Shown here in pieces: positions 9,229 through 55,598 of a DNA stretch of 64,000 bases; position 1 is the stretch's first letter, and the number at the start of each line of letters is the position of its first letter. The position numbers were made by a program, and so were the translations under genes. Under the pieces are notes generated by a model, which saw nothing but the letters and a program-made list of their open reading frames with translations, had not been told where the DNA came from and ran no database searches. The stretch is from positions 124,001-188,000 of the IMG/VR virus record IMGVR_UViG_3300025030_000041, one strand, 5' to 3'.

Positions 9229-9229
9229 A

Positions 9230-20275: not shown

Positions 20276-20281
20276 GTTATA

Positions 20282-21708: not shown

Positions 21709-23685
21709 TTATTCAATTTTTTTTAGATTATTCCATTCAAATTTATAATTCCCACAATCATACACTCTATAAATATTCCTACTTATCATTATATCATGTT
21801 CAGTCATATTACTGTCATAACCCTCTGCTATCAATTTATCCTTTCTAAAATTAAACCTATGCCTCCTTACTCCATCTACTACATACCAATAATTAGGTCT
21901 GCTGGTACTCACATACTCAAATCCTAATTTAATATACAAGTTATTATCCTTGGCGTTTGTCCAACATCTATTAGCATAACTTATAATTTTAATAGGAGTA
22001 TACTCTTCCACAAAATATTTAAATAGTTTAGACGCTGCACCTATTACACTAGTATTTAACTTATTACAAAACCTTAATAACTCATACTCTCCATTTTTAG
22101 ATACTTGGCCTAAACTTTTTCTTTTATTACCAAATGTCATCAAACTAACTAACTCCTCTCCATAATACAAACCTATATTATATTTACTTACACACTTGCC
22201 CTGCAAATGATTATCTTCTAAAAACTGATTAGACTCTTTAAACGAGACTTCTTTAATTCTACACTTCCTAGAATATATTCTATTAAGAGTCTTATTTAAA
22301 AGGTTAAGTATACGTGATTTAATAATATCTTGCATATAAGTCCAGTCATCTTCCCATATATGAATTAAAGTTATATCATTTTTAATAGCAAGTTCAGTTT
22401 TTGTTAAATGATAGTTTTTATCTCTATATAATTCATTATGCCAATATACTCCATTAAATTCAAATGCTAATTTATAATCAGGTAAATATACGTCAAGTTC
22501 CTTTGGAGAAATAACACTTCTGTCATTAACTGTAATACTTATTAGAGTGTCTATTGATAAAATAAAATCATAAATACTTTTTTGAGAATCAGAGTAACTA
22601 TATACTGGATTACAATGAATACACGGAGTAACTTTATATCTTATTACTCTTAAATATAAAAAATTTAAAAGTATTGAGTACTCATTATTACATTTATCAC
22701 ATAAAATTTTAATATTTCTATTTAAATCTATACTTAGAATATTTAAATTATCATATTTTTCTTTTATTCTAATGATAGATTTTTTTAAATTATTATCTTT
22801 TATTTTATCAGTAATATATTTAGATTTAGTTGGATTATCTACCCCATACTTTTCTATTAAAGACTTTTTTATTTTATCTTTAACTAAACCAAATTGAACA
22901 TTATAGTCAACTTGGTATTTATCATTACATGTATTTTTTCTTTTAATATTTGAAGTTTGTATTTCTTCTTTATCTCTATTTAAATGAGAATTTTTAATTT
23001 TATTTCTTATTTTTTCTGATTGATTCGGATGGCTAACACCATACTTTTTAATAGAAGTATTTTTAATTTTATCTCTAATTTCTTTAGATTGAGAAATATA
23101 TTCTACTCCGCGTCTTTCTAAATTAGTTTTTTTAATTTTTTCTTTAACTTTTTCTAATTGAAAGACATTATCTATTCCATATTTTTGTTTTATTTTTAGT
23201 CTAATTTCGTCTTTGCTCTTATTAAATGGATGGTCAGTTTTTGTTTTACCATTCTTATAAGCAACTTCCCATGGAGAGTTACCTCCATTTTTTTTCATAG
23301 TTTCTTTTTTAAGTAGAATCGTTTCTTCATTAATTACGCATTGTGAACAACAATACTTTCTATACCCAATTGAAATATTTCTATAATCAACAATATTATT
23401 ACATTCTTTATTATTACATTTAATTATAGAAGTTATATCATTTATATAATGATATAATAATTGATTAAAATATTTATCATTTCTTAATAAACTTTCCAAA
23501 CTATTTTTAATACTGTAATTTAAAACTTCTAAATATAAATTAAAATAATTTTTCTTTATATATTTTTCAGTACATCTGGACGCTGGCCTATCTAATATAA
23601 AATCTATTATACCATTATACGAATCTTTAGGTTTTTCTGTAAAAACATTTTCTTCTAAAAGACTAATAACTTTATTTTTATCCAT
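21709..23685 (-). CDS. Hef-like homing endonuclease
   Basis: Cys clusters, KYGVxN repeats, ELDVYLPDYKLAFEFNGVYWH nuclease motif, C-terminal FLEDNHLQG...YELLRFC domain; free-standing downstream of tail tube. Confidence 0.75.
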   Translation of the reverse strand: MDKNKVISLLEENVFTEKPKDSYNGIIDFILDRPASRCTEKYIKKNYFNLYLEVLNYSIKNSLESLLRNDKYFNQLLYHYINDITSIIKCNNKECNNIVDYRNISIGYRKYCCSQCVINEETILLKKETMKKNGGNSPWEVAYKNGKTKTDHPFNKSKDEIRLKIKQKYGIDNVFQLEKVKEKIKKTNLERRGVEYISQSKEIRDKIKNTSIKKYGVSHPNQSEKIRNKIKNSHLNRDKEEIQTSNIKRKNTCNDKYQVDYNVQFGLVKDKIKKSLIEKYGVDNPTKSKYITDKIKDNNLKKSIIRIKEKYDNLNILSIDLNRNIKILCDKCNNEYSILLNFLYLRVIRYKVTPCIHCNPVYSYSDSQKSIYDFILSIDTLISITVNDRSVISPKELDVYLPDYKLAFEFNGVYWHNELYRDKNYHLTKTELAIKNDITLIHIWEDDWTYMQDIIKSRILNLLNKTLNRIYSRKCRIKEVSFKESNQFLEDNHLQGKCVSKYNIGLYYGEELVSLMTFGNKRKSLGQVSKNGEYELLRFCNKLNTSVIGAASKLFKYFVEEYTPIKIISYANRCWTNAKDNNLYIKLGFEYVSTSRPNYWYVVDGVRRHRFNFRKDKLIAEGYDSNMTEHDIMISRNIYRVYDCGNYKFEWNNLKKIE

Positions 23686-24319: not shown

Positions 24320-24375
24320 CTATATAGTATTATTTTTAGTTATTTATTTTATTTATTTATTCAAAAAAAAAACTT

Positions 24376-25011
24376 TTAAACATAAACGTCTTCTTTTACA
24401 TCAATTACTTCTATTACTTCTTTTTTTGTAAATTTCTTTGTATTATTAGAACAATCAAACCATCCATTAATTGTAGTAGGAGCTCCTTCAAGACTAGTTA
24501 AATAATTATAAGAACAATCAAAACCTCCATTAACTGTAACAGGGGCTCCTTCAAGACTAGTTAACTTATTATTAGAACAATAAAAATATCCATTAACTGT
24601 AACAGGAGCTCCTTCAAGACTAGTTAACTTATTATAAAAACATGAAAAATATCCATTAACCGTCATAGGAGCTCCTTCTAGACTAGTTAAGTTAGTATTA
24701 GAACAATCAAAATTTCCAACTACTTCTTCTATATTTAGCTCTCTTAAATCGTTTATTTCCTTTATTCTAACATTACTAATTATGACTTTAATATTCTTAA
24801 AGTCTTCTATATTATTTTTAGTTATAAGCATATCTTTATTAAAAGGTTTAGCAATAAATATTTGTTCTTTGGTATAGCCTTTATTTAGGTAAGGAAGTAA
24901 CAGGTCATCCCAACGTTCTTTAAGTCTTCTAGGTATAAATATATCTTTAGCACTAAGTTTAGGAGTTTCTTCTTCAGATATAAATTGTTCAAACAGCTTC
25001 ATATGTTTCAT
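24376..25011 (-). CDS. capsid-targeted LRR protein, paralogue 5 (4 repeats)
   Basis: family core and repeats. Confidence 0.85.
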   Translation of the reverse strand: MKHMKLFEQFISEEETPKLSAKDIFIPRRLKERWDDLLLPYLNKGYTKEQIFIAKPFNKDMLITKNNIEDFKNIKVIISNVRIKEINDLRELNIEEVVGNFDCSNTNLTSLEGAPMTVNGYFSCFYNKLTSLEGAPVTVNGYFYCSNNKLTSLEGAPVTVNGGFDCSYNYLTSLEGAPTTINGWFDCSNNTKKFTKKEVIEVIDVKEDVYV

Positions 25012-25016
25012 TATTT

Positions 25017-26175: not shown

Positions 26176-26197
26176 ATTTTTATTTTTATTTTTATTT

Positions 26198-26833
26198 TTA
26201 AACATAAACCTTTCCTTTTACATCAATTACTTCTCTTACTTCTTTTTCTGTAAATTTCTTTGTATTATTAGAACAATCAAACCATCCATTAATTGTAGTA
26301 GGAGCTCCTTCAAGACTAGTTAGTTTATTCGTATTACAATCAAAATATCCATTAAATGTAGCAGGAGCTCCTTCAAGACTAGTTATATTATTAATAAAAC
26401 AATAATAACTTCCCTTAGCTATAGTAGGACCCCCTTCAAGACTATTTAACTTATTATTAGAACAATAAAAACCTCCATTAACTGTAGTAGGAGATCCTTC
26501 AAGACTAGTTAAACTATTATTAGAACAATAAAAAAAACCAGTTACTTCGTCTATATCTAGCCCACTCAAATAAGTTATTTCATGTATTCTAACGTTACCT
26601 ATTATAACTTTAATATTCTTAAAGTCTTCTATATTATTTTTAGTTATAAGCATATCTTTATTAAAAGGTTTAGCGACAAATATTTGTTCTTTAGTATAAC
26701 CTTTATTTAGGTAAGGAAGTAACAGGTCATCCCAACGTTCTTTAAGTCTTCTAGGTATAAATATATCTTTAGCACTAAGTTTAGGAGTTTCTTCTTCAGA
26801 TATAAACTGCTCAAAAAGTTTTATATGTTTCAT
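26198..26833 (-). CDS. capsid-targeted LRR protein, paralogue 6 (4 repeats)
   Basis: family core; N- and C-terminal blocks nearly identical to paralogue 5. Confidence 0.85.
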   Translation of the reverse strand: MKHIKLFEQFISEEETPKLSAKDIFIPRRLKERWDDLLLPYLNKGYTKEQIFVAKPFNKDMLITKNNIEDFKNIKVIIGNVRIHEITYLSGLDIDEVTGFFYCSNNSLTSLEGSPTTVNGGFYCSNNKLNSLEGGPTIAKGSYYCFINNITSLEGAPATFNGYFDCNTNKLTSLEGAPTTINGWFDCSNNTKKFTEKEVREVIDVKGKVYV

Positions 26834-27525
26834 TTTAATTCGTCTTGATTTAAATCTAGTACTTTATTAAAATTGTCATTTGATATTAACACAACTTTCA
26901 TAGGCTGGTTATTAGTATATTCTAAGTAATTTAATTTTGGGAATGCTATAAATTTAATATCATTATATTCAAACAAAAATGGGGATTCAATTTGTTCTTT
27001 AAATATATCAGATCCTGATGGTAATGTAATACTAGTTTTTTTAGATTTTACCCCTATATTTTTAGCAAAAAACTCTACAATATTTTTATTTGAAGTTTCA
27101 GTAAATATTAATAGACTATTAATATTCGTTTCTAAAGTTTTTAAAAGACTTGGGAATAATGTATTGTTTAAATAAGTAAAATATTGTTGTTCTTTAAGTA
27201 TATTTTCAGCTTGCTTAATTGATTCATCATCTTTAGTGTCATTCGCAGGCTCAGCTTCATTAATGAATGATAAAAAATCTTTAGTATATTGTTCATCTAT
27301 TTTATAAGTAAACCAGTTTGATTTTTCATTTAATTTAATACCAAATAATGATTTATTATTATAATTTATAGTTGAAATATAAAATTTTTTATTATTTGTT
27401 AGTTCTATTAATCTTATAGATTCTTTATTATTTTCTTTTATTAAAGAAATATTTTTTATTCTATTAGGTAAAATATTATTAGAATATAAAAAATTAGAGA
27501 TTATAGTATTTAATTGTCTTTCCAT
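26830..27525 (-). CDS. hypothetical protein
   Basis: 231-aa ORF coupled by ATGA overlap. Confidence 0.6.
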   Translation of the reverse strand: MERQLNTIISNFLYSNNILPNRIKNISLIKENNKESIRLIELTNNKKFYISTINYNNKSLFGIKLNEKSNWFTYKIDEQYTKDFLSFINEAEPANDTKDDESIKQAENILKEQQYFTYLNNTLFPSLLKTLETNINSLLIFTETSNKNIVEFFAKNIGVKSKKTSITLPSGSDIFKEQIESPFLFEYNDIKFIAFPKLNYLEYTNNQPMKVVLISNDNFNKVLDLNQDELK

Positions 27526-27825: not shown

Positions 27826-28520
27826 GTATAAACTCCACCTTTTACTTTAACAGCGTTTCTCACTTCTTTTTCTGTAAATACTTTACTATTATAAGTAATA
27901 GTAAAATTTCCACCAACAATAGTAGGAGCTCCTTCTAGACTAATTAACATATTATCAGAACAATGAAAATTTCCAGTAACTGTAGTAGGAGCTCCTTCTA
28001 GACTAATTAACATATTATCAGAACAATGAAAATTTTCATTAACTGTAGTAGGAGCTCCTTCTAGACTAGTTAATTTATTATTAAAACAATAAAAATCTCC
28101 ATTAACTATAATAGGGCTTCCTTCAAGACTAGTTAATTTATTATTAAAACAATAAAAATCTCCATTAACTATAATAGGGCTTCCTTCAAGACTAGTTAGC
28201 TTATTATTAGAACAATTAAAATATCCAGTTACTTCTTCTATACCTAGTGCTCTCAGATCAGTTATTTCTTTTATTCTAACACCACCTATTATTACTTTAA
28301 TATTTTTAAAGTCTTCTATATTATCTTTAGTTATAATAATAGGTTCATTAAATGGTTTAGCAACAAGTATTTGTTCTTTGGTATAACCTTTATTTAGGTA
28401 AGGAATGAGCAAATCATCCCATCTTTCTTTAAGCCTCCTAGGTATAAATATATCTTTAGCGCTAGGCTTAGGAGTTTCTTCTTCAGATATGAATTGTTCA
28501 AAAAGTTTTATATATTTCAT
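27822..28520 (-). CDS. capsid-targeted LRR protein, paralogue 7 (5 repeats)
   Basis: family core; two pairs of near-identical 63-bp repeats. Confidence 0.85.
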   Translation of the reverse strand: MKYIKLFEQFISEEETPKPSAKDIFIPRRLKERWDDLLIPYLNKGYTKEQILVAKPFNEPIIITKDNIEDFKNIKVIIGGVRIKEITDLRALGIEEVTGYFNCSNNKLTSLEGSPIIVNGDFYCFNNKLTSLEGSPIIVNGDFYCFNNKLTSLEGAPTTVNENFHCSDNMLISLEGAPTTVTGNFHCSDNMLISLEGAPTIVGGNFTITYNSKVFTEKEVRNAVKVKGGVYT

Positions 28521-30416: not shown

Positions 30417-32066
30417 ATGGAAGTCATATCTAAAAAACTCATAATAGATAAATTAAATTCTTATAAATTTAAAGTTAAAGAATTTCAAGTAGATATTATT
30501 TATGAAATACTAGACTCATTTTTAAATGGATATACTAATGTTATATTGAATGCTCCAACTGGTGTAGGAAAAAGTGTAATTGGATTTATTGTAGCGGATA
30601 TACTAGGAGATATTGAGAAAGAAAAATTAAAATCAATAATATTAATACAAAATAATTCATTAGTCGATCAATATAAAGATATGTTTCAATATTTTTCAAA
30701 TACTGAAATTATAAAAGGTGCCGATAATTATGAATGTGAAATTTTAAATAAAAGTGCAAAGTACTGTATTTATAATATATTAAAAGAACAAAAAAGTAAA
30801 GGTAAATTATATAATTGTTATAACTGTAAATTTAAGAAGTCAAGACAAAAAATAAATGAAATACCTCATCTTATAACAAATTATCAATATTTTTTCATAT
30901 CGCGACTATATTCAGACCATTTAGAAAAACGATTAATTACAATATATGATGAGTGCCATGAAATTAATGACGCTTTTTCTAATAGTTATACAATATATAT
31001 TTCTGAGCAATTACTAAATGAATATTTAAAAGAATTACAAAGTGAAGACCCTAATATTCTAAGTAGAGCTTTAAATATATTTAATTTTGTATCAATATTA
31101 GATAAAGATTATCGTAAAACCTTAAATTTTTTATTTGAAGCATATTCGTTATTAGAAAAATATTTTCATGATAAAGCATTAGAAAGAGTTTTGAAAAATG
31201 ATTATAAAGGGTACTATAAATATAAATCTAAAGAAATAAAATATAAAGGGCTAGGTTGTAAAATTGATGATTTATTAAAATATAACTACACTCACACTGT
31301 AGATATTAATAATGTAACTAACGAGCTAACTATAAAACCTGTATTTATAAATGATTTGTTTAGTAGTATTACTTTTTCAAAATTTAATCTATTCATGAGC
31401 GCAACAATTCATCAAGATTTTATAATTAAAACTTTAAATTTAGATAAAAATGCTATAAAATTCATAGGAGCAGACTCTCCATTTAAAAAAGAAAATAAAA
31501 AAGTTATATTTTTAAATTCACATACTTTAAATTATAAGAATACTAAAGACTCGGGTGTTATACAAAAAATATCAGATATATGTAATTTAATAATTGAAAA
31601 AAAACATAAAAACGAAAAAGGTATTATCTTAACACCATCTTTTTATTTAACAAATGAAATATTTAATAATTTTATAAAATTAAATTCAATTAAAGTATTT
31701 AAACATGAAAGTGGACAAATCCTAAATTTAATCATAAATGATTTTAAGTTATATAATGGTCCAGCTTTACTAATATCTCCATCTCTATTTATAGGAATAG
31801 ACTTACCAAACGATTTTTCAAGATTTCAAATAATGATAAAGGCACCATTTCATTCTTTAGGAGATTCGCGTATGTCATATATATTAAAAAATTACCCTGA
31901 TATTTATAATATAATTACAATGTTTAAAATTATACAAGGATTTGGAAGAAGCACTAGAAATGAACATGACTACTCGACTACATACTGCCTAGATACTAAT
32001 ATCAAACGGCTATTTAATATCGCCCCACTGGAAATACAAAATCAATTTGATATAATAAATGTATAA
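30417..32066 (+). CDS. DinG/XPD-family SF2 helicase
   Basis: APTGVGKS Walker A, YDECH Walker B, MSATI motif III, GIDLP and IQGFGRSTR motif VI; Cys residues at the Fe-S position. Confidence 0.85.
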   Translation: MEVISKKLIIDKLNSYKFKVKEFQVDIIYEILDSFLNGYTNVILNAPTGVGKSVIGFIVADILGDIEKEKLKSIILIQNNSLVDQYKDMFQYFSNTEIIKGADNYECEILNKSAKYCIYNILKEQKSKGKLYNCYNCKFKKSRQKINEIPHLITNYQYFFISRLYSDHLEKRLITIYDECHEINDAFSNSYTIYISEQLLNEYLKELQSEDPNILSRALNIFNFVSILDKDYRKTLNFLFEAYSLLEKYFHDKALERVLKNDYKGYYKYKSKEIKYKGLGCKIDDLLKYNYTHTVDINNVTNELTIKPVFINDLFSSITFSKFNLFMSATIHQDFIIKTLNLDKNAIKFIGADSPFKKENKKVIFLNSHTLNYKNTKDSGVIQKISDICNLIIEKKHKNEKGIILTPSFYLTNEIFNNFIKLNSIKVFKHESGQILNLIINDFKLYNGPALLISPSLFIGIDLPNDFSRFQIMIKAPFHSLGDSRMSYILKNYPDIYNIITMFKIIQGFGRSTRNEHDYSTTYCLDTNIKRLFNIAPLEIQNQFDIINV

Positions 32067-32094
32067 AAATAAACGATTGATTATCAATTAATTA

Positions 32095-32169
32095 TATTTA
32101 GTTCAAAAATAAAGTACTTAAAAATTTTAATATATCAAACTTATTTCTTATTTTTGTATTAAATATAAC
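32095..32169 (+). promoter_or_regulatory. gene-less promoter module, copy 1 (upstream GTTA deleted)
   Basis: near-identical to 35873-35950 and 56282-56359; TATTTTTG at 32149 fits the Bacteroidota -7 box TAnnTTTG. Confidence 0.65.
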
Positions 32170-32263
32170 GGTTACAGCCTTATTTAGTGTGGGCAAAATT
32201 TTTGTTTTCTTTTTTCTCCTCACAGTTCGTAGTAATGTTGATACGAAGCACGGTTATTGCATG

Positions 32264-32471
32264 TAACGTTTTCGGGCTTGGAGATAGTTTTTAATGCGAT
32301 TTAAACAACAGAAATATGTTAGAAAAGATACAGAAAAAAGTAGAAGACCTTAGAATAAAGGTATATGCTGGACAGAACAACGAAGACACAGAAAAATACT
32401 TATATGACATTGAGCAAATGATATTCAAAGCGATGGACGAAGCATTAAAGATTTCTTCCAAGCCAGTGTTA
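32264..32471 (+). repeat. attC-like hairpin H1 (208 bp, contains start of ORF 32316)
   Basis: TAAC gttttcg GGCTTGGA ... TCCAAGCC agt GTTA. Confidence 0.75.
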
Positions 32472-32564
32472 GCAGATAGTTGCCAACATAATTGGCTGAA
32501 ATCTCATTCAAGGCATATGCTCTATTGTGGGAGCTGCGGTAAATATAAACCCGAAGGCTCTTAG
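32316..32564 (+). CDS. cassette protein crossing the GTTA junction, CxxxW...CxxC C-terminus
   Basis: junction at KPV|LADS; Zn-ribbon-like CQHNW..CGSCG. Confidence 0.65.
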   Translation: MLEKIQKKVEDLRIKVYAGQNNEDTEKYLYDIEQMIFKAMDEALKISSKPVLADSCQHNWLKSHSRHMLYCGSCGKYKPEGS

Positions 32565-32578
32565 TTGGCAATTTCTGC

Positions 32579-32658
32579 TAACGTTTTGCAGATAAGCGAA
32601 GGCACAAATAGCTTTGGCTTTGTGGGGTGGGATTTGGGCTTTTGCTTATGTGCTGTTA
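32579..32658 (+). repeat. attC-like hairpin H2 (80 bp)
   Basis: TAAC gttttgc AGATAAGCGAAGGC ... GCTTTTGCTTATGT gct GTTA. Confidence 0.85.
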
Positions 32659-32733
32659 TGTGTCTGTAAAATTTTTAATAATTATTTTTTGCGTGGGAAT
32701 TAATCAATTTAATCATTTAATAAAAACAACAAA

Positions 32734-33264
32734 ATGGAAACTTTAAACAAATTATTTACCGAACAAGATGTAGAAAATGTATCAGAAAAAATACTTTCAT
32801 CAACTAAACAAAAAATCAAAGACCAAATTGCTGATACCTTTTACGAAGAAATGTCAGATTGTTTGTTTGAACATTACAACAATTTCAAAGACGGAATGAA
32901 AGCCGATTTGCTAAAGGAAATTACAGACCAATATGTAAGCGACCCTGTAAATTATCAATTTAGAGAATTTAGAAATAAGCTATTTGCAGAGAACAAAGAT
33001 GTAATTCTAAAATCATTGACCGACCAAGCAATTTTTGAAACAGTTGAGAGTATCATTTTAGAATATACTCATAAACAACAAACTTTTGGATGGATGTGGA
33101 ATGAGGCTATCGCAAAAATTGTATTAGCAAATTGGGGTAAATTCAAAGATGATGAAAGAATACAAATGTCATTTGGTAGAGAAATTGATAATTTGAAAGG
33201 ACAAATACAAAGACTGCAAGAACGACTAAATGAAGTTTCATCAATAGTAGACGAAAATCATTAA
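32734..33264 (+). CDS. cassette hypothetical protein (helical, C-terminal coiled coil)
   Basis: 176-aa ORF inside module 32655-33315. Confidence 0.7.
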   Translation: METLNKLFTEQDVENVSEKILSSTKQKIKDQIADTFYEEMSDCLFEHYNNFKDGMKADLLKEITDQYVSDPVNYQFREFRNKLFAENKDVILKSLTDQAIFETVESIILEYTHKQQTFGWMWNEAIAKIVLANWGKFKDDERIQMSFGREIDNLKGQIQRLQERLNEVSSIVDENH

Positions 33265-33311
33265 ATCATTTGTGCGGTGGGAAAAATAATTATTAAAAAT
33301 TTTATTGCACA

Positions 33312-33401
33312 TAACGGTTGGGGGTTTGCGATAGTGCCGCTTACCACAAATTCCAATTTCAGCACTAAACTTCATAGCGGCATTTTGCAAACCCTGTGTT
33401 A
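33312..33401 (+). repeat. attC-like hairpin H3 (90 bp)
   Basis: TAAC ggttgg GGGTTTGCGATAGTGCCGCT ... AGCGGCATTTTGCAAACCC tgt GTTA. Confidence 0.85.
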
Positions 33402-33448
33402 TATGAAGTTTTATTTTTTGAAGGGCGGGCAACAAACAAATTATTAAA

Positions 33449-33718
33449 ATGGAAAAATTAACATCAATCAGATTGCAGCCAATGATTAACATCAATAAAC
33501 CCAATATGGATTTGTGGTGTCCGACATTAAATTTTGGAAGAAAGAAAGCAGGTAAATTCAAATTTCCAATAGTATTTAAAAGTATTAAACCTGCTGAAAA
33601 ACTTTACGATGAACTCCAAAATTTAATTGGCAAATCATTGGACGAAGTGAAAGCTGCATCTGAACCGCTTTATGATAAATACAAGAAGTACGATTATCGG
33701 GTGGGTGGTAAAAAATAA
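33449..33718 (+). CDS. cassette hypothetical protein
   Basis: 89-aa ORF in module 33398-33731. Confidence 0.65.
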   Translation: MEKLTSIRLQPMININKPNMDLWCPTLNFGRKKAGKFKFPIVFKSIKPAEKLYDELQNLIGKSLDEVKAASEPLYDKYKKYDYRVGGKK

Positions 33719-33727
33719 AATTTCCTA

Positions 33728-33841
33728 TAACGGTTTGGTATAAACGCAGTGTTTAACTAAACTTAATTTGAAATACAAAACTTAAAATTATGATAAAGAC
33801 ATTGATTGAAAAACTGGAAACATTACGTTTATACTTTGTTA
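33728..33841 (+). repeat. attC-like hairpin H4 (114 bp, contains start of ORF 33790)
   Basis: TAAC ggtttg GTATAAACGCAGTGTTT ... AAACATTACGTTTATAC ttt GTTA. Confidence 0.85.
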
Positions 33842-33996
33842 GTAAACGCTGTTTTAAAGTAACTTATAAAAGTAAATTGAATGGTAATATAGGAACAATT
33901 GGATATTATGGTAAATCAATTGATGGTGTTAAGAAAAAGTTTCAAAAAGAATTTGAAAATTCAATTATTTTAGACGTTTCTTACAATGTTTACTAA
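33790..33996 (+). CDS. cassette protein crossing the GTTA junction
   Basis: LRLYFV|SKR; stop codon is the TAA of the next TAAC. Confidence 0.65.
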   Translation: MIKTLIEKLETLRLYFVSKRCFKVTYKSKLNGNIGTIGYYGKSIDGVKKKFQKEFENSIILDVSYNVY

Positions 33997-34365
33997 CGTT
34001 ATCGGGCTTGGCGAAGGGCGATTATTAACCGAGAATGTTACTACGAAGAACTAAACAAAAATTTAATAAATAAAAAAAGCGATGGAAATAGATGTAAAAA
34101 AACTGATGCCAGAAGTAACAGATAATCATTTTGAAACGATAGACTTGTTACTTAAAGCAAACCAAGAAATAATTGAAGCATTACATATTATGCAATCCAG
34201 CATTGACAATTGGGATGATGCAGAATGTATGCAAATCAATAAAGACAGAATGATAAAATACTTTAATAGATTTAGTAAGGAGGTGTAGGCTTTTTATTTA
34301 TTAAATTTTTGAACCGAAATGATAATACGAAGCGATAAACTAAGCCTTTTGCCAAGCCTGTGTTA
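33994..34365 (+). repeat. attC-like hairpin H5 (372 bp, encloses ORF 34082-34288)
   Basis: TAAC gttatcg GGCTTGGCGAAGGGC ... GCCTTTTGCCAAGCC tgt GTTA. Confidence 0.8.
34082..34288 (+). CDS. hypothetical protein inside hairpin loop
   Basis: 68-aa ORF with A-rich leader. Confidence 0.6.
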   Translation: MEIDVKKLMPEVTDNHFETIDLLLKANQEIIEALHIMQSSIDNWDDAECMQINKDRMIKYFNRFSKEV

Positions 34366-34404
34366 TAAGGCGAAGCGAACCGTTGGCTTTTCGCCAATGG
34401 CTTA

Positions 34405-34533
34405 TAACGGTTTGCAGGTTTATTCAGTTGCGACTTTAAAAACGAAAAATTATGATAACAGAAAAACAATACTTAAAAGCGAAAAAGTTAATTGCAGACT
34501 ACGAAAGCCAGCAATTGAATAAACATGTTGTTA
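34405..34533 (+). repeat. attC-like hairpin H6 (129 bp, contains start of ORF 34452)
   Basis: TAAC ggtttgc AGGTTTATTCAGTTGC ... GCAATTGAATAAACAT gtt GTTA. Confidence 0.85.
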
Positions 34534-34622
34534 TAAGCAGTAAGCCGACCTCAAAAAAGAAGAAGGTGATTATAGATGCAGATAAATTTTCAAAGATGTG
34601 TGATGTTATTAAACGGATATAG
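34452..34622 (+). CDS. 56-aa cassette protein crossing the GTTA junction (not in ORF track)
   Basis: own translation MITEKQYLKAKKLIADYESQQLNKHVV|ISSKPTSKKKKVIIDADKFSKMCDVIKRI. Confidence 0.6.
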   Translation: MITEKQYLKAKKLIADYESQQLNKHVVISSKPTSKKKKVIIDADKFSKMCDVIKRI

Positions 34623-34634
34623 GCTTATTGCTGC

Positions 34635-34758
34635 TAACGGCTACAAACATGCTTAGTGCCTAATTAAATAGTAATTAACAATCAAAATAGTAGAATTATG
34701 AAAATAGCAAAAATGTTCAAAACTGCACTACAACAGGCATTAAGTATGTTTGTTGTTA
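34635..34758 (+). repeat. attC-like hairpin H7 (124 bp, contains start of ORF 34698)
   Basis: TAAC ggctac AAACATGCTTAGTGCCT ... AGGCATTAAGTATGTTT gtt GTTA. Confidence 0.85.
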
Positions 34759-34958
34759 GCAACCATGTTTACTGGGTTTTCCGTAAATTCAAACGACTTG
34801 AAACAATGGAAACTGCACCTGAAACATGGTTAATTGATGTGGATTTTGCAATCCATTTTGTAGAGCCATTTAAAAGTTATAAAGAGGCAAAGAAAGCAGT
34901 TGACTTTGCAAAACATTTACAACCTTGGCAAGAGTTTGTCATCTTACATGGTTGCTAA
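34698..34958 (+). CDS. cassette protein crossing the GTTA junction
   Basis: ALSMFVV|SNH; stop codon is the TAA of the next TAAT core. Confidence 0.65.
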   Translation: MKIAKMFKTALQQALSMFVVSNHVYWVFRKFKRLETMETAPETWLIDVDFAIHFVEPFKSYKEAKKAVDFAKHLQPWQEFVILHGC

Positions 34959-35045
34959 TGGTTGAGTGTATGAGTAGTGTGGCTTTGCACATACTTTCAA
35001 CTTACAGATAAACTTATTTAGCCACATTACTTATACACTTTGTTA
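34956..35045 (+). repeat. attC-like hairpin H8 (90 bp, TAAT core)
   Basis: TAAT ggttga GTGTATGAGTAGTGTGGCT ... AGCCACATTACTTATACAC ttt GTTA. Confidence 0.85.
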
Positions 35046-35067: not shown

Positions 35068-35292
35068 ATGAAATTTATAAAAAAACAATTACTTAGAAGT
35101 ATAAACTTTGTTAAACGCTATTGGGAATTTATCGTTGTAGAATTTGCCGAAGATTTGGATTTAACTTGGTTTGGTAAATGGTTTTTAAGAACAATGATGT
35201 TTGGTTTATTTATGTGTTATATTCCAATAGTAATTGTTTTTATGCCACTATGGTTAATTATATTCAAATACGATGAAAGTTTAGGAATGTAG
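35068..35292 (+). CDS. cassette membrane protein (one TM)
   Basis: hydrophobic MMFGLFMCYIPIVIVFMPLWLIIF. Confidence 0.6.
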   Translation: MKFIKKQLLRSINFVKRYWEFIVVEFAEDLDLTWFGKWFLRTMMFGLFMCYIPIVIVFMPLWLIIFKYDESLGM

Positions 35293-35312: not shown

Positions 35313-35400
35313 TAACATTTAGGTGTATGAGAAGGTTTGCTTAGATGAACTTTCAAATTACCGACAATACTTATAGCAAACTTTCTTATACACCTTGTTA
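35313..35400 (+). repeat. attC-like hairpin H9 (88 bp; second copy at 55317)
   Basis: TAAC atttag GTGTATGAGAAGGTTTGCT ... AGCAAACTTTCTTATACAC ctt GTTA. Confidence 0.85.
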
Positions 35401-35460: not shown

Positions 35461-35781
35461 ATGAACGAATACAAATTAAAATTATTGGATTACATCTCAA
35501 AAAATTATGAGAATGTGGTAAAATCAGCACAAGGTGGTGAATATATTGAAATAGATTTAATACCAAACAGCCACGATGGATTACACGATTTACCCGAAAT
35601 TTTGGAATGTTGTGAAAAAAACGGAATTGATGTATATATGTTTTTACGTAGTTATCCAATGGATATTGGTGATGGTATTAGAATGGGAAGATATATGTAT
35701 TATATGCAAAAAACCACCAAGGCAATACTGGATGATTTAAAAAATTTTAACACAGAAACTCAAAACGAAGAACAAAAGTAA
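35461..35781 (+). CDS. cassette hypothetical protein
   Basis: 106-aa ORF in module 35397-35794. Confidence 0.65.
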   Translation: MNEYKLKLLDYISKNYENVVKSAQGGEYIEIDLIPNSHDGLHDLPEILECCEKNGIDVYMFLRSYPMDIGDGIRMGRYMYYMQKTTKAILDDLKNFNTETQNEEQK

Positions 35782-35790: not shown

Positions 35791-35876
35791 TAACGTTCTG
35801 TAAATATGATTAGTTGAAGAGTACTGTCATTTATAATTTAGTAGATTGATTATCAATTAATTATATTTACTTGTTA
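35791..35876 (+). repeat. attC-like hairpin H10 (86 bp; copies at 56199 and partial at 32075)
   Basis: TAAC gttct GTAAATATGATTAGTTGA ... TCAATTAATTATATTTAC tt GTTA. Confidence 0.85.
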
Positions 35877-35950
35877 TATTTAGTTCAAAAATAAAGTACT
35901 AAACGTGTTAATATATCAAAAATATTTCTTATTTTTGTATTAAATATAAC
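35873..35950 (+). promoter_or_regulatory. gene-less promoter module, copy 2
   Basis: GTTATATTTAGTTCAAAAATAA...TTATTTTTGTATTAAATATAAC; TAnnTTTG at 35930. Confidence 0.7.
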
Positions 35951-36070
35951 GGTTGAGAATATAAGTAGTAACCGATTTGAAACAAAAATGTTAAATTAAC
36001 GTATAATGATATTAAAAGGTAGTAACTTAAATAAACCACATAACTCGGTTATTACTTATATTCTTTGTTA
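35947..36070 (+). repeat. attC-like hairpin H11 (124 bp)
   Basis: TAAC ggttga GAATATAAGTAGTAACCGA ... TCGGTTATTACTTATATTC ttt GTTA. Confidence 0.85.
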
Positions 36071-36391: not shown

Positions 36392-36474
36392 TAACGGTTG
36401 AGGGTTTATGCAGTTAAATTTTTACCAATAAAAAATAGAAATGAAAAAATTTTATTGCATTAAACCCTGTGTTA
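36392..36474 (+). repeat. attC-like hairpin H12 (83 bp)
   Basis: TAAC ggttga GGGTTTATGCAGTTAAATTTTT ... AAAAATTTTATTGCATTAAACCC tgt GTTA. Confidence 0.85.
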
Positions 36475-36552: not shown

Positions 36553-37110
36553 ATGGAACAAGTAAAAAAAGCATACGAAGAAATATTCAAAGCGTTAAAG
36601 AAACACAAGGACATTTGCGTTTTTGATGTAGAAGATTTGGAAAGAAAATCAAAAGTTCATCTTTTCGGGCTTACATTAAAAGAGGAATATGGCTTAAACA
36701 TAGACCCGAAGCAAGTTCAGGCGGTAAACTATTTTAAACCATCAGACCATACTTGGATTGGATGGTATGGCGAAAAGCATAATCGAACAATAAGCTGGAG
36801 CGTTGATGGCAGACAGCCCGAAGATGAACTTTTATTGCAAATCGGATTTCCAACAGGGGCTTATATTTTTGGCGAAGATTATGCAACCGATTTCTTTCAA
36901 AAGTTTTGGTTGGAATTGAAAACATACAAGCCCGATTATATTGATGAAGCGAACTGTTGCTTGTATTGGAACATCAAAAACGCAAAAGAGATTTTCAATT
37001 CATATAACGCTTTGCTAAAAAAATATTACGAACTAAATAAAGAGGATGCGAAACAAAGACTAATTGATAAAATGAAAAAGGAATTGGAGCAGTTAGAAAA
37101 ATCATCTTAA
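36553..37110 (+). CDS. cassette hypothetical protein
   Basis: 185-aa ORF in module 36471-37159; ISWSVDGRQP, FPTGAYIFG motifs. Confidence 0.7.
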   Translation: MEQVKKAYEEIFKALKKHKDICVFDVEDLERKSKVHLFGLTLKEEYGLNIDPKQVQAVNYFKPSDHTWIGWYGEKHNRTISWSVDGRQPEDELLLQIGFPTGAYIFGEDYATDFFQKFWLELKTYKPDYIDEANCCLYWNIKNAKEIFNSYNALLKKYYELNKEDAKQRLIDKMKKELEQLEKSS

Positions 37111-37283
37111 TCATTGGAGCGTTGGCAAAAAATAATGTTTAAAAAATATTGCGGCTAACTATTATATATATACAAGTATGCTTAATATATTGAATATGAA
37201 TACTAAATTCGATTGCATTATCAGACAATTTAAAAAAACTCAGATAACCCCTTAATACACATCAAATAAAACAATTTAAACTT

Positions 37284-40647: not shown

Positions 40648-41094
40648 TTAAGTATAGACATCACCTTTTACATCAATTAATTTTCGTACTTCTTCTTCTG
40701 TAAATTTCTTCTTATTATTATTACTAAAAAAATTTCCATTAACTATTTTAGGAGCGCCTTCTAGACTAATTAAGTTATTATAAGAACAACTAAAATATCC
40801 AACTACTTCTTCTATATTTAGCTCTCTTAAATCGTTTATTTCCTTTATTTTAGCATTACCTATTAAAACCGTAATATTCTTAAAATCTTTCATATTATCT
40901 TTAGTTATAATAAAAGTGTCATTAATGGGTTTCACTACAAATATTTGTTCTTTGGTATAACCTTTATTAAGGTAAGGAAGTAATAAGTCATCCCATCTTT
41001 CTTTAAGCCTCCTAGGTATAAATATATCTTTAGCGCTAAGCTTAGGAGTTTCTTCTTCGGATATAAATTGTTCAAATAGTTTTATGTGTTTCAT
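40648..41094 (-). CDS. capsid-targeted LRR protein, paralogue 8 (1 repeat)
   Basis: minimal member with intact N- and C-caps. Confidence 0.85.
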   Translation of the reverse strand: MKHIKLFEQFISEEETPKLSAKDIFIPRRLKERWDDLLLPYLNKGYTKEQIFVVKPINDTFIITKDNMKDFKNITVLIGNAKIKEINDLRELNIEEVVGYFSCSYNNLISLEGAPKIVNGNFFSNNNKKKFTEEEVRKLIDVKGDVYT

Positions 41095-43191
41095 TTATCT
41101 AATCCTGTCAGTTCTAAAAGTTAAATTTTGTATAGTACTATCTATACAAATTATATCAAAAATTGGTTTATATAAAAATAAGGTAGAACCTGCGAAGTCT
41201 GCATCACTAAATATGTCTATTACGTCTATGTAGTTATTTGTAGAATTTGTTAATAATTTAATACTAAACGTGTTTGGAACAATTTCATCATTAAAAATTA
41301 GTCTAAATACTTGGCCGTTTTTCCATTTATTTTTAGAATCGTCTATTATAATTTCAACATCTCCATTTAATACTATTCTAGTACCAGAGTTAACATGTCT
41401 TAAGTAGTTAGTAAATTGTTTTAATTCTATTGTTGTTACATTTATAATATTTACTTCTGGAGAATTTGATAAATTATAATTTTGTACAGTATTAGTTATT
41501 CCAATTTTATTCGGAACATTTTTATCAATTGAAATTCCATCACCGTTTTTTATTGCGTCTATATTATACGAAACTTGGATAGACGTTTTATTATTATAAA
41601 TATTACTAATTTCATCATAATTTTTATTAATTAAACTCATTATAGTTTCGGTATTATCAAATAATGCTTGGTTTGAATTTAATGAATCCTCTATTGTTTT
41701 AAGTCTAGTATCTATTGAAGTAGTCACAGCAGAATCTATTATTAATGATTTTAAATCTGTAATTTCATTTTTTATATTAACAATTTCACTAATATTATCT
41801 CCATAAATTCTAGTTAAATCTTTAAATTGAGTAAGAACATCAGTGTAAAGGTCTAATGAAAATGTAGAATAATCATTAATACTTTTTTCTATAAATACAG
41901 TATCAATAGATGTATCAAATTTAAAATTAGCTTTAAATGCATATGATGTTCCATTAGTATTATTAATAGGGTCTGGCCGATATTTCATTAAAGTTGGAAT
42001 TTTAAAATTAATTCCAGATTGTTCAGGTTTATTTAAAAATAAAATACCATATAAATTAGTAGAAGTATCAGCTGGATTATTTTGATCAAATACATCATAA
42101 TATATTAATACAGCATTAAATTCAAAAGATTTACTTCCAGCGTCATCAGCTAATTGGCTTAAAGATTTAATTGATAAATTTTGTGAAGCTAATGTATAAT
42201 CATTTAATGTAAAATCCAAAGATATACCGTCTAAAGTAGACCTCTTATATTCTACCGTAGTAGATCCTTTTATTTTTCTTATTTTTTCAGTTAATGCACT
42301 ATGAAAATTAGTTATGGAATCAGTAAAATATGAATTATTAGTTTGATTTGGTGAATGCCAATATCTTTCTTCCCATTGAGATAACTGGTAATTATATATT
42401 TCTTGTGTTACACTTCTATCATCAATATCAAAAAATGATTTAATAGATAATCCGTATGGATGAGTATCAAAATAATTTCTTCCAACTAAATATTCAGTAT
42501 TTAATGGATTATCAGGAATATTAGTTAAATTCATTCCAGGTGCATAATTCTCGTCTTCTACTGAATCAAATAATACATAAGGCGTATTACCAACGGAGGT
42601 AGGAGTATGAATATATACCTCAGTATACGCATTTTTAGAATGTTTAACACTATTAACAACATCTATATCTGCAATATATCGTACAACTTTTTTATAATTT
42701 GATGGAGTATTAGTATTACTTAATAGGTGTTCATCTTCTTCAACAAATAAATCTTTAACATTTGTAATTGAATTTTCAAATGGAGTAGCTTTTCTAAATC
42801 GCATAACCCCTAATTCTTTAAGCCATTTCCAAAATACTCTTTCACTTACATTTCTTTTTAATTCTCTATTATAAGCACTCCTACTTGTAATTAAACTTTC
42901 TAAGTTTAAACAATAATTTTGAAATGACTCACTTAAATTAATAGATTGGTCAGTATTTACTCCTTCTATTAATGGGGTTTCTCCTAATACATTAAATTGT
43001 AAAAAATTTTGGTTAGTTTCAGCGTCATTTATTTTACCTATTTCTGGGATACGTAATAATGCAAATTTGCTAAATACAAACTTATTTCCTGTATTATTTG
43101 CAGTAGTCGTTAAGTCTTCAATTGAAGACGGAAATGAATAAAAAATACCCTCGCTGCTTTTTATTGGTTTTATAAATGGAGTTGTTGCCAT
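41095..43191 (-). CDS. large putative virion structural protein
   Basis: 698 aa beside sheath gene; FVFSKFALLRIP, ERVFWKWLKE, AYTEVYIH motifs; coiled-coil segment. Confidence 0.55.
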   Translation of the reverse strand: MATTPFIKPIKSSEGIFYSFPSSIEDLTTTANNTGNKFVFSKFALLRIPEIGKINDAETNQNFLQFNVLGETPLIEGVNTDQSINLSESFQNYCLNLESLITSRSAYNRELKRNVSERVFWKWLKELGVMRFRKATPFENSITNVKDLFVEEDEHLLSNTNTPSNYKKVVRYIADIDVVNSVKHSKNAYTEVYIHTPTSVGNTPYVLFDSVEDENYAPGMNLTNIPDNPLNTEYLVGRNYFDTHPYGLSIKSFFDIDDRSVTQEIYNYQLSQWEERYWHSPNQTNNSYFTDSITNFHSALTEKIRKIKGSTTVEYKRSTLDGISLDFTLNDYTLASQNLSIKSLSQLADDAGSKSFEFNAVLIYYDVFDQNNPADTSTNLYGILFLNKPEQSGINFKIPTLMKYRPDPINNTNGTSYAFKANFKFDTSIDTVFIEKSINDYSTFSLDLYTDVLTQFKDLTRIYGDNISEIVNIKNEITDLKSLIIDSAVTTSIDTRLKTIEDSLNSNQALFDNTETIMSLINKNYDEISNIYNNKTSIQVSYNIDAIKNGDGISIDKNVPNKIGITNTVQNYNLSNSPEVNIINVTTIELKQFTNYLRHVNSGTRIVLNGDVEIIIDDSKNKWKNGQVFRLIFNDEIVPNTFSIKLLTNSTNNYIDVIDIFSDADFAGSTLFLYKPIFDIICIDSTIQNLTFRTDRIR

Positions 43192-43233: not shown

Positions 43234-43749
43234 TTAATAATTAATAATTCCAGCTTTAGTATCAATTGCATGTTTTATTTCTTTTTGTAAAAACTTTTTG
43301 CCTCTATTTTGGGATATGATAACATCATCTGTAACTAATTTAGGAGCTCCTTCTAGACTAGTTAATGCATTAAAAGTACTAATGAATCTGCCATTTACTA
43401 TTTTAGGACTACCTTTACGATTAGTTAAATTATTGCTAGAACAATTAAAATCTCCAAGCACCTCATCTATATCTATATCCCATTTATTCATATCGCCGTT
43501 TATATAAACTAAACCAACTATAATTTTAATATCTTTAAAATCTTTTACATTATTATCATTTATAATAACTTCATCTCTAAGAGATTTAGCAACTACTATT
43601 TGTTCTTTTGTATAACCTTTATTAAGGTAAGGGATAAGAAGGTCATCCCATCTTTCTTTAAGTCTTCTAGGTATAAATATATTTTTACGACTAAGTTTAG
43701 GTATGTCTTCTTCAGATATAAACTGTTCAAATAATTTAATACGTCTCAT
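43234..43749 (-). CDS. capsid-targeted LRR protein, paralogue 9 (2 repeats, divergent)
   Basis: MRRIKLFEQFISEE plus family core. Confidence 0.8.
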   Translation of the reverse strand: MRRIKLFEQFISEEDIPKLSRKNIFIPRRLKERWDDLLIPYLNKGYTKEQIVVAKSLRDEVIINDNNVKDFKDIKIIVGLVYINGDMNKWDIDIDEVLGDFNCSSNNLTNRKGSPKIVNGRFISTFNALTSLEGAPKLVTDDVIISQNRGKKFLQKEIKHAIDTKAGIINY

Positions 43750-43798
43750 TATTTTTATTTATATAAAAATTAAAAAAAAATATGATTTGCTCCTTGAA

Positions 43799-44296: not shown

Positions 44297-44993
44297 AAAC
44301 TTCTCCTTTTATATCAATAACATGTCTTACTTCTTTTTCTGTAAATTTCTTTAAATTATTGCTTATATTAAAATCTCCTCTTATTATAGAGGGTGTCCCT
44401 TCAAGGCTAGTTAATCTATTATAAGAACAATCAAAAAAGCCATTAACTATAACGGGACCACCATCTAAACTAGTTAAGATATTATTAGAACAATTAAAGT
44501 TACCTCCTATTGTGGAAAGGCATCCTTCAAGACTAGTTAACTTATTATTAGAGCATGAGAAATTTCCATTAACTGATACAGGACTTCCTTCTAAACTAGT
44601 TAAGTTATTATTAGAACAACTAAAATACCCATTAACTATAGTAGGACCGCCTTCTAAACTAGTTAGTTTATTTAACTTATTTAAGTAACAATCAAAATTT
44701 CCTGATATTTCATCTACCCTTAATACTCTCAAATCATTTATTCCTCGTATTATAGCATTACCTATTATAACTTTAATATTCTTAAAGTCTTTTATATTAT
44801 TTTTAGTTATACTAATAACTTCATTAAAGGGTTTAGTTACAAATATTTGGTCTTTTGTATAACCTTTATTTAGATATGGAATACACAAAGAATCTCGTCT
44901 TTCTTTAAGTGGTATAAATATATCTTTGACACTATAATTATGATTCTTAAATTTATTAGATGCATTACAGTCTAATAGACTATGATATTTCAT
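44289..44993 (-). CDS. LRR protein, paralogue 10 (5 repeats; targeting peptide replaced)
   Basis: family core from KDIFIP onward, unrelated first ~20 aa. Confidence 0.8.
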   Translation of the reverse strand: MKYHSLLDCNASNKFKNHNYSVKDIFIPLKERRDSLCIPYLNKGYTKDQIFVTKPFNEVISITKNNIKDFKNIKVIIGNAIIRGINDLRVLRVDEISGNFDCYLNKLNKLTSLEGGPTIVNGYFSCSNNNLTSLEGSPVSVNGNFSCSNNKLTSLEGCLSTIGGNFNCSNNILTSLDGGPVIVNGFFDCSYNRLTSLEGTPSIIRGDFNISNNLKKFTEKEVRHVIDIKGEVYV

Positions 44994-55309: not shown

Positions 55310-55316
55310 TTGGTAG

Positions 55317-55393: not shown

Positions 55394-55414
55394 TAAAATT
55401 TAACTTTTTGAGCT

Positions 55415-55585: not shown

Positions 55586-55598
55586 ATTTTATTTCTGC

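Follow-up and report, generated by a model that had tools for sequence, protein, structure and literature searches.

An integron-like cassette array in a giant phage, with recombination-site-like hairpins that appear to supply start codons and N-terminal peptides

The analysed window is a stretch of 64,000 nucleotides from the IMG/VR virus record IMGVR_UViG_3300025030_000041 (positions 124,001 to 188,000 of that record). Between positions 32060 and 37260 on the + strand, just after a helicase gene, it contains a chain of 12 hairpins alternating with small gene modules (Table 1). Each hairpin has the form 5'-TAAC, GGTT bulge, stem, loop, stem, T, GTTA-3'. The chain ends in a conserved terminal site and a truncated stub of a tyrosine recombinase gene, and a second, smaller array lies further downstream. 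Four ORFs, starting at 32316, 33790, 34452 and 34698, have their ATG in a hairpin loop and their first 17-51 codons within the hairpin, and are read through the right arm and the GTTA core into the following module.

Table 1. Features of the hairpin arrays in the window (coordinates are those of the window).
Position	Strand	Feature	Observations
32060-32173	+	Start of the array: degenerate right half of an H10-type hairpin plus an "empty" GTTA..TAAC module	92-93% identical to 35874-35954; inverted repeat I9
32264-32471	+	Hairpin H1 (208 nt); loop holds the leader, ATG and 51 codons of ORF 32316-32564	Core read as GTG|TTA
32579-32658	+	Short hairpin H2, followed by the gene module with ORF 32734-33264	Module has 34-nt complementary ends; covariance model 45.7 bits
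33309-33404	+	Short hairpin H3, followed by ORF 33449-33718	Covariance model 68.5 bits
33728-33841	+	Long hairpin H4; loop holds an A-rich leader, the ATG at 33790 and 17 codons	ORF runs on to 33996
33994-34365	+	Hairpin H5 (372 nt) with the whole ORF 34082-34288 in its loop	Flanked by a perfect 21-nt inner inverted repeat; other metagenomes hold the arms without this ORF
34362-34408	+	"Empty" GTTA..TAAC module between H5 and H6	
34405-34638	+	Complete cassette unit: hairpin H6 (34405-34533; holds the ATG and 27 codons) plus the rest of ORF 34452-34622	Bounded TAAC to TAAC; present three times in this phage genome at 99% identity with different neighbours
34635-34758	+	Long hairpin H7; loop holds the leader, the ATG at 34698 and 20 codons	ORF runs on to 34958
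34956-35045	+	Short hairpin H8, followed by ORF 35068-35292	5' core TAAT; covariance model 75.3 bits; a contig from another metagenome skips exactly 35068-35292
35313-35400	+	Short hairpin H9, followed by ORF 35461-35781	Same family as the recombinase-proximal hairpin of a Crocinitomicaceae MAG; covariance model 88.6 bits
35791-35950	+	Hairpin H10 (35791-35876) plus an "empty" module (35873-35950)	Multicopy unit; depth 342 against about 21
35947-36070	+	Hairpin H11, followed by the ORF ending at 36373	
36392-36474	+	Hairpin H12, followed by the last gene module (ORF 36553-37110)	Module has about 33-nt complementary ends
37153-37175	+	Conserved terminal site, TAAC followed by TATTATATAT	Candidate attI equivalent; about 95% identical to L022, a locus with an intact recombinase gene
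37196-37255	+	Truncated stub of the tyrosine recombinase gene	First ~18 codons match the intact copy, then the match ends; two intact copies in the same genome, at L022/L025 and L024/L099; the 271-aa recombinase is encoded at L022:9748-10563
55314-56358	+	Second, smaller array: decayed H9-type hairpin (55314-55405), H13 (55599-55722), H10-type hairpin (56199-56285) and an empty module	

The observation in the original prediction, that these four ORFs begin within hairpins and continue through the core, is confirmed, with one detail to be corrected. It had been claimed that the GTT of the core is an in-frame Val codon in all four ORFs. This is true in three of them, while in ORF 32316 the Val is GTG, whose last base is the G of the core, and the TTA of the core is Leu. 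The pattern is more than chance, since our scan found 13 such hairpins on the + strand of the window, against about 1.3 on both strands of shuffled sequences. A covariance model built from hairpins of other phages hit 12 + strand sites at E from 1e-4 down to 3e-15, including H4, H6 and H7, but gave only two weak echoes on the - strand. As DNA, H6 and H7 fold better on the + strand (z -2.8 and -3.5) than on the - strand (z about -1.4), whereas H4 is weak (z -0.6). Stop-codon recoding was considered because an open frame follows the TAG of ORF 32316 through H2, and it was rejected, as long ORFs are intact under the standard code and TAA, TGA and TAG all terminate them.

The hairpins are a conserved folded-strand element. 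In an alignment of 70 non-redundant hairpins, TAAC and GTTA are invariant, 18 of 25 predicted pairs show compensatory change, and one G·T wobble is present in 70 of 70 sequences. In 43 stems G·T outnumbers A·C 68 to 12, so the coding strand folds, and in the stems formed by gene-module ends the counts are 134 against 14. It is possible in principle that the hairpins are miniature transposable elements (MITE- or REPIN-like) with terminal inverted repeats, as they are discrete and multicopy and their similarity ends at both cores. However, this is very unlikely. The arms differ between copies but stay complementary, which indicates selection on pairing rather than on a transposase-binding sequence, the gene modules also have covarying complementary ends, no target-site duplication is seen at the boundaries, and no recombinase, transposase or HUH gene was found among window ORFs of 120 aa or more. 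A search of Rfam returned only a tRNA, a BLAST search of the array against GenBank phages gave only one hairpin-sized hit, in LR756500.1, and a search for close relatives through the helicase returned only the same phage.

A recombinase was found only after loci fetched through hairpin matches had been pooled. It is a tyrosine recombinase of 265-271 aa belonging to the Xer/IntI clade, with Pfam PF00589 plus PF13495 and conserved R, K, HxxR, H and Y residues, and its nearest families are XerA/"integron integrase", TIGR02249 and VchIntIA. In 80 viral loci that were fetched through this recombinase alone, there are 302 same-strand hairpins upstream, 5 downstream and 4 on the other strand, and 71 of the 80 loci have at least one. 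The terminal site lies within 160 nt upstream of the recombinase ATG in 59 of 66 unique loci, against a background of 0.1 per kb, in the form of a TAAC-N(1-5)-WTATAT motif 40-107 nt upstream. The recombinase stands at the 3' end of such arrays, although LR756500.1 has such an array and no close homologue of the recombinase (E < 1e-20). Homologous recombinases in Flavobacteriia, including isolates, sit beside the same hairpins (47 covariance-model hits). There the genes are antisense to the folded strand, as in integrons, which argues for a DNA-level role rather than an mRNA one.

The unit seen to be copied intact runs from TAAC to TAAC, with hairpin and gene together, as in the threefold unit 34405-34638. 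Among 429 pairs of similar hairpins with unrelated flanks, similarity stops 0-2 nt past GTTA in 240 pairs and 0-2 nt before TAAC in 286 pairs. The signal as to which neighbour travels with a hairpin is weak, with 4 pairs sharing only the downstream module and 0 sharing only the upstream one. There is no experimental or read-level evidence of excision, circles or inversion, and the joints that skip or lack a module come from contigs of other genomes. The same hairpin family beside different genes could also arise by homologous recombination or gene conversion rather than by site-specific exchange. One such reading is that the hairpins are PeSL-type regulatory cassettes as in T4-like phages, in which intergenic stem-loop and expression-signal modules shuffle neighbouring genes only through general homologous recombination between similar copies, with no dedicated enzyme. 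The phage has T4-type functions (topoisomerase II, T4-type terminase and a tail sheath), the array is a region of small ORFan genes, and the hairpins are shared among many genomes while the genes are not. Furthermore, PeSLs also include the start codon of the downstream gene and sit at indel and replacement sites (PMC4122927). This reading is considered unlikely. Sigma-70-like promoters number 30 against 29.1 expected and terminator-like sites 1 against 1.5, the Bacteroidota -7 motif is in 1 of 78 loop leaders, and TAnnTTTG abuts the core in one hairpin family only (20 of 265). The invariant cores and wobble, the polar linkage to the recombinase and terminal site, and the bacterial arrays in integron orientation also speak against it.

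The interpretation in the original prediction, that the hairpin doubles as a translation-start and N-terminal module and that exchange at GTTA would shuffle protein parts in frame, is partly supported. The first part is supported for the long hairpins. Three of the four ORFs (33790, 34452 and 32316) have no usable ATG after the core. Among 265 unique hairpins from other loci, an ATG inside the hairpin with an ORF running at least 25 codons past the core occurs 78 times in the GTT frame, 28 times in the TTA frame and 6 times in the third frame, so that a second frame is common. In the 34698 family the stretch between GTTA and the first internal Met changes mostly synonymously, in related loci lipoprotein signal peptides (with a lipobox) are split by the core, and a codon-position bias of 51, 37 and 64 (p = 0.03) was observed. 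It is therefore unlikely that the read-through ORFs are annotation artefacts with chance ATGs in the loops and genes starting downstream of the core. Some observations do agree with that view: ORF 34698 has an internal Met 16 codons after the core, from which one database entry is called, the loop ORF of H13 stops 13 codons after the core, before the next gene, and the N-parts are only weakly constrained as peptides (31 synonymous against 121 non-synonymous changes). No RNA or protein data exist for this phage; no RNA run was listed as containing the region in a search that was not confined to RNA, and none was analysed. Whether folding gates ribosome access, as had also been suggested, was not measured.

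Partner switching at the junction had been proposed in advance as the test of modular shuffling, and it is seen. The H4 N-part (17 aa ending LRLYFV) is joined in frame to at least 8 unrelated C-parts, and similarity stops exactly at GTTA. C-parts that lack any ATG also speak for translation from the loop. The N-part of H7 has two partners, and two larger N-part families have 8 and 9 members, each with a different C-part. The opposite outcome, homologues that keep the same two halves, had been named as counter-evidence, and it applies to most homologues of ORF 34698. Exchange at GTTA is therefore an evolutionary pattern and not a demonstrated crossover point. The original prediction did not recognise the hairpins as integron-type sites linked to a tyrosine recombinase.

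A further possibility is that the hairpins act mainly in mRNA, as processing sites, stabilisers or translational insulators that present the start codon in a loop, and that the recombinase is an unrelated neighbour. The sense-strand wobble pairs, the covarying structure, and the ATG and A-rich leader in the loop fit this, and the lower stem, asymmetric loop and upper stem recall phage RNase III sites, a resemblance that was not examined. This is also held to be unlikely as the main role, since in Flavobacteriia the same hairpins fold from the strand antisense to the cassette genes and so would not be in the mRNA, the linkage of 302 against 5, 4 and 0 is too strong for a chance neighbour, and copy units are bounded by the cores. 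An RNA role may well coexist with a DNA role in the phage.

The region is best explained as a phage-borne, integron-like cassette array, which we read as an undescribed integron variant (probability about 0.75). In this view each cassette is an attC-like hairpin followed by a coding module, the hairpin having a 5' core TAAC, an asymmetric GGTT/T internal loop, a stem of about 20 bp with the invariant wobble, a variable loop and a 3' core GTTA. The recombinase, encoded behind the TAAC-TATTATATAT site, would recombine the folded single-stranded hairpins at the 5' core and so move hairpin-plus-gene units. The long hairpin class (110-130 nt, some about 200 nt) carries an A-rich leader without a Shine-Dalgarno sequence, the ATG and the first 15-50 codons in its loop, and the right arm, the core and the first bases of the gene module would be translated as a junction such as ..ISDV-S-x-S.. 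or ..LL-. Hairpin families are reused by many cassettes, so that unrelated proteins share N-terminal peptides. The analysis itself establishes the structure, its covariation, the strand bias, the linkage to the recombinase, the unit boundaries and the reuse of N-parts, while catalysis on these sites, the single-stranded DNA substrate, the cleavage point and translation from the loop ATG are inferences. Searches of an incomplete literature collection for phage integrons or attC-like phage arrays found nothing.

A bolder reading, somewhat less likely than not, is that jumbo phages of Bacteroidota, and Flavobacteriia themselves, carry an active and so far undescribed kind of integron, run by a Xer-type recombinase that lacks the IntI domain. 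In the phage version the folded recombination sites would be translated, so that every capture or exchange event would build an in-frame chimera of a site-encoded N-terminal peptide and a cassette-encoded body, a natural engine for modular protein assembly and rapid turnover of small phage genes. The finding would extend integron-type recombination of folded single-stranded sites to phages and to a recombinase without the IntI-specific domain, which bears on how integron integrases arose from Xer-like enzymes. It offers a concrete mechanism for the hyperplastic ORFan regions of large phages, and it points to cassette arrays in Flavobacteriia, a phylum reported as almost free of integrons (PMC9024848). 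A recombination site that doubles as a leader, start codon and N-terminal coding segment makes each cassette self-sufficient for translation in hosts that do not use Shine-Dalgarno sequences. It also leaves a fixed peptide "scar", which matters for gene calling and could be used for in-frame DNA assembly.

The closest known systems are integrons, especially sedentary chromosomal integrons with homogeneous attC repeats such as the Vibrio VCRs. Shared with these are arrays of small, mostly ORFan cassettes separated by imperfect-palindrome sites of variable length with outer boxes ..TAAC and GTTA.., a strong bias towards folding from one strand, complementary cassette ends, homogeneous sites beside differing genes, and a tyrosine recombinase of the same clade at the array end that corresponds to attI and intI in folded-strand coordinates. 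The sites satisfy the attC description (imperfect inverted repeats with outer boxes RYYYAAC and GTTRRRY and inner paired boxes), and some copies read GCCTAAC and GTTAGGC; the IntegronFinder attC model itself was not applied. An attI-like site next to the recombinase gene at the array end is likewise present, its function as attI not having been assayed. In contrast, the integrase criterion of IntegronFinder is not fulfilled, as the recombinase lacks the IntI-specific insertion. TIGR02249, a 315-position model, matches in two stretches, leaving a block of positions after about position 180 unmatched, and scores 135-171 bits against a cutoff of 265, and VchIntIA also matches in two stretches. 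The definition of a cassette as a promoterless ORF followed by its own attC and expressed from Pc at the integrase end does not fit either, because the hairpin precedes its ORF, the ORFs point towards the recombinase and no Pc equivalent was identified. As to the selection of one folded strand, antisense to the genes, through an unpaired central spacer and extrahelical bases, the evidence points both ways: strand bias is strong and the asymmetric internal loop is present, but no extrahelical bases are evident, the invariant wobble is seen in their place, and the folded strand is the coding strand in the phage and the antisense strand in the Flavobacteriia loci. Excision of cassettes as circles and insertion at attI were not followed, only metagenome contigs having been examined. 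Further differences are the jumbo phage host, the position of both the genes and the recombinase on the folded strand, a basal stem of 11-34 bp rather than 7 bp, and the inferred translation of the sites.

In class 1 integrons, ORF-11 and ORF-18 in attI1 and short ORFs inside attC sites (PMC8876359) also place a translation start inside a recombination site, which reads across the crossover point into the inserted cassette and helps express cassettes that lack their own initiation region. Those are short coupling peptides that terminate in or just after the core, while here the frame continues as the N-terminus of the cassette protein, in nearly half of the long hairpins. The PeSL and PmSL mobile regulatory cassettes of T4-like phages (PMC2839356, PMC4122927) likewise occur in phage hyperplastic regions, as conserved intergenic stem-loop modules that include the downstream start codon and mark gene replacement points. 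However, PeSLs are a terminator stem-loop followed by a sigma-70 promoter and a Shine-Dalgarno sequence, an arrangement not found here, and they have no conserved core tetranucleotides, no linked recombinase and a start codon outside the stem-loop. In Xer/dif systems and Xer-exploiting elements that use folded single-stranded DNA (CTX phage attP), a folded single strand can mimic a two-arm core site, and the recombinase found here is Xer-like (best structural relatives XerA 4a8e and 5hxy), but its sites are many and lie in tandem arrays with cassettes rather than as a single chromosomal dif-type target. In shufflons (Rci recombinase, pilV), a tyrosine recombinase and several short sites exchange the C-terminal parts of a protein in frame by inverting segments of one gene between duplex repeats, while in the present array all genes point the same way and no inversion variants were seen.

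The window is part of a 246-kb viral contig, IMGVR_UViG_3300025030_000041, with a GC content of about 26%, and it carries a T4-type terminase, type II topoisomerase, a tail sheath and a DinG-like helicase. A protein with a type IX secretion sorting domain points to a Bacteroidota host, and so do the Shine-Dalgarno-less leaders and the bacterial relatives of the system described below. This 709-aa protein, in which the sorting domain is C-terminal, also has an SprB repeat, PKD domains and a weak Hoc-like hit, which is a host-like Bacteroidota surface-protein architecture inside a phage. In addition, at least eleven paralogous segments of about 210 aa (75-89% nucleotide identity) carry internal repeats around the palindrome AGGAGCTCCT; some of them lie next to structural genes, and Pfam gives only weak LRR-like hits. 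A 658-aa protein that matches PHROG 'homing/HNH endonuclease' families and Pfam DUF7487 sits among these paralogous repeat genes, and a single tRNA-Asn (GTT) gene lies between the packaging and topoisomerase genes.

Right after the helicase gene, the strand given is a chain of twelve hairpins (numbered with the prefix H). Each has the form TAAC, a 4-7 nt bulge (usually GGTT), a 17-24 bp stem, a loop of 35-330 nt, the stem again, 1-3 nt and then GTTA. The hairpins alternate with gene modules that run from GTTA to the next TAAC, and the two ends of each module are themselves complementary over 8-34 nt. The coordinates of the features are collected below.

Positions of the hairpin arrays, their ORFs and other features (window coordinates unless another record is named)
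Feature	Position	Strand	Remark
Main hairpin array	32060 to about 37260	+	Twelve hairpins
ORF 32316	32316-32564		Starts in H1; 51 codons up to the core
ORF 33790	from 33790		Starts in H4; 17 codons up to the core
ORF 34452	from 34452		Starts in H6; 27 codons up to the core
ORF 34698	from 34698		Starts in H7; 20 codons up to the core
ORF inside H5	34082-34288		Wholly enclosed by the hairpin
Open frame after ORF 32316	32562-32670		Runs through H2
Repeated unit	34405-34638		234 nt; H6 plus the rest of its ORF
Segments skipped in contigs from other metagenomes	35068-35292 (ORF); ORF inside H5; 32699-33258
Conserved terminal site	37153-37175		Followed by a partial recombinase gene
Smaller array	55.3-56.4 kb
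Paralogous segments	5958-6610, 8587-9230, 17754-18403, 19802-20301, 24374-25012, 26196-26834, 27887-28231, 40712-41096, 43342-43758, 44417-44934, 62935-63580	both	At least eleven
tRNA-Asn (GTT)	10098-10171	+
HNH-type match, DUF7487	21709-23685	-	658 aa
SprB/PKD/sorting-domain protein	52235-54364	+	709 aa
Array in another phage	LR756500.1 3400-7100 (locus L001), and L016		462-kb uncultured phage

The original prediction held that four ORFs start inside a hairpin and read through the GTTA core into the next module, with the GTT of the core as an in-frame Val codon in all four. The observation is confirmed, since the four ORFs start inside H1, H4, H6 and H7 and each reads through the core, but GTT is an in-frame Val in only three of them. 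In ORF 32316 the codons are GTG and TTA, so that 'all four' is wrong by one. After the TAG stop of this ORF, the same frame stays open for 35 codons through the whole of H2, up to a TAA just past its core, and no evidence of TAG recoding was found in the window. Chance does not explain the hairpins, because a pattern scan found 13 on the + strand, against about 1.3 on both strands of shuffled sequence, and a covariance model built only from the hairpins of other phages found 12 + strand sites and only two weak - strand echoes.

The hairpins are a conserved and strand-specific structure. Seventy non-redundant short hairpins from other loci were aligned, with TAAC and GTTA invariant, and 18 of 25 predicted pairs show compensatory change. 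One G·T wobble is present in 70 of 70 sequences and another, next to the core, in 69 of 70. With transitions scored symmetrically, the stems hold 68 G·T against 12 A·C (p = 1e-10), while the long-range stems formed by the ends of gene modules hold 134 against 14. The coding strand is therefore the one that folds. Hairpin lengths are bimodal, at about 80-90 nt and about 110-130 nt, with a few near 200 nt. Hairpins of the class of about 200 nt (loci L034, L063, L073 and L096, and ORF 32316 of the window) enclose a 45-60 aa helical N-terminal domain, and the module after the core encodes a ~30-aa Cys-rich (CxxC...CxxC) zinc-ribbon-like tail.

Pooling of loci that had been fetched through exact matches to hairpin arms revealed one recurrent neighbour, a 265-271 aa tyrosine recombinase with the Pfam domains PF00589 and PF13495. 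All catalytic residues are present, and its nearest relatives are XerA/'integron integrase', TIGR02249 and VchIntIA, but it lacks the IntI-specific insertion. Subsequently, 80 viral loci were fetched through the recombinase alone. They hold 302 same-strand hairpins upstream of the gene, 5 downstream and 4 on the other strand, and 71 of the 80 loci have at least one. A distantly related huge phage, LR756500.1 (terminase about 36% identical), has the same kind of array and shares a 116-nt hairpin at 90% identity with the window; no close recombinase homologue was found in LR756500.1, and a near-identical 429-kb contig comes from the same groundwater sample as the window phage. A conserved site, TAAC followed by TATTATATAT, lies 40-107 nt before the recombinase ATG in 59 of 66 unique loci. 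The window's own array ends with exactly this site, followed by the first ~18 codons of the recombinase gene, about 95% identical to an intact copy, after which the match ends. Two intact copies, each behind an array, lie elsewhere in the same genome (fetched loci L022/L025 and L024/L099).

With respect to what moves, the unit that consists of H6 plus the rest of its ORF occurs three times in this genome at 99% identity. Its neighbours differ on both sides, and identity starts and stops at TAAC. Across loci, 429 pairs of similar hairpins have unrelated flanks, and similarity stops 0-2 nt after GTTA in 240 of them and 0-2 nt before TAAC in 286. Contigs from other metagenomes, which are other genomes and not variants of this one, cover the hairpins at high depth but not the genes, and their joints skip exactly the three segments listed in the table.

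The interpretation that the hairpin doubles as a translation-start and N-terminal module, with exchange of protein parts at the core, is partly supported. In 265 unique hairpins, a loop ATG whose ORF runs at least 25 codons past the core occurs 78 times in the GTT frame, 28 times in the TTA frame and 6 times in the third frame. It is frequent in the long classes, being found in 63 of 137 hairpins of 100-140 nt and in 12 of 18 longer ones. Loop leaders are 46% A and lack a Shine-Dalgarno sequence. A switch of partners at the junction had been proposed in advance as the way to probe the idea, and such switching was seen. The H4 N-part (17 aa ending LRLYFV) is joined in frame to at least 8 unrelated C-parts in different contigs; several of these C-parts have no ATG of their own, and nucleotide similarity ends at GTTA and begins at TAAC. 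The N-part of H7 has two partners, and two larger N-part families have 8 and 9 members, each with a different partner. On the other hand, homologues that always retain the same two halves had been named as evidence against shuffling, and most homologues of ORF 34698 do keep both halves together, while selection on the N-part peptides themselves is weak. In the 34698 family, the codons between the core and the first internal Met change mostly at third positions, and in TTA-frame cases lipoprotein signal peptides are split by the core.

A bacterial counterpart also exists. Recombinase homologues at 38-49% identity are nearly all from Bacteroidota, and the covariance model finds 47 hairpins in those loci. 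Most of them lie downstream of the recombinase gene on the opposite strand, including in isolates of Seonamhaeicola, Salegentibacter, Leeuwenhoekiella and Polaribacter. In two MAG loci the cassette genes are antisense to the folded strand, which is the classical integron arrangement, and one of those hairpins belongs to the family of window H9. This argues that the shared function is at the DNA level. The bacterial enzymes are about 380 aa and also lack the IntI insertion. Flavobacteriia and other Bacteroidota genomes (among the fetched loci L105-L184, e.g., L139 from a Crocinitomicaceae MAG, L141, L112, L113, L120, L133, L152 and L159) carry arrays of the same hairpins beside a ~380-aa Xer-type recombinase in integron-like orientation. 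These appear to be chromosomal cassette arrays in a phylum that the IntegronFinder 2.0 survey reports as almost free of integrons.

The system is organised like an integron, in that it has strand-biased hairpin sites with AAC and GTT cores, a recombinase of the same clade, a terminal site beside that gene and arrays of ORFan cassettes. While these features were read from the sequences, recombination activity, the single-stranded substrate, the cleavage point and translation are all inferred. No description of such phage arrays was found in the literature searched, which was incomplete. The system departs from integrons in two defining characters, the IntI domain and the rule that the ORF comes before its attC, and it is also found in phages. 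The PeSLs are the nearest phage analogue, but their defining promoter and terminator are absent here. In class 1 integrons, ORF-11 and ORF-18 in attI1 are a precedent for translation that starts inside a recombination site.
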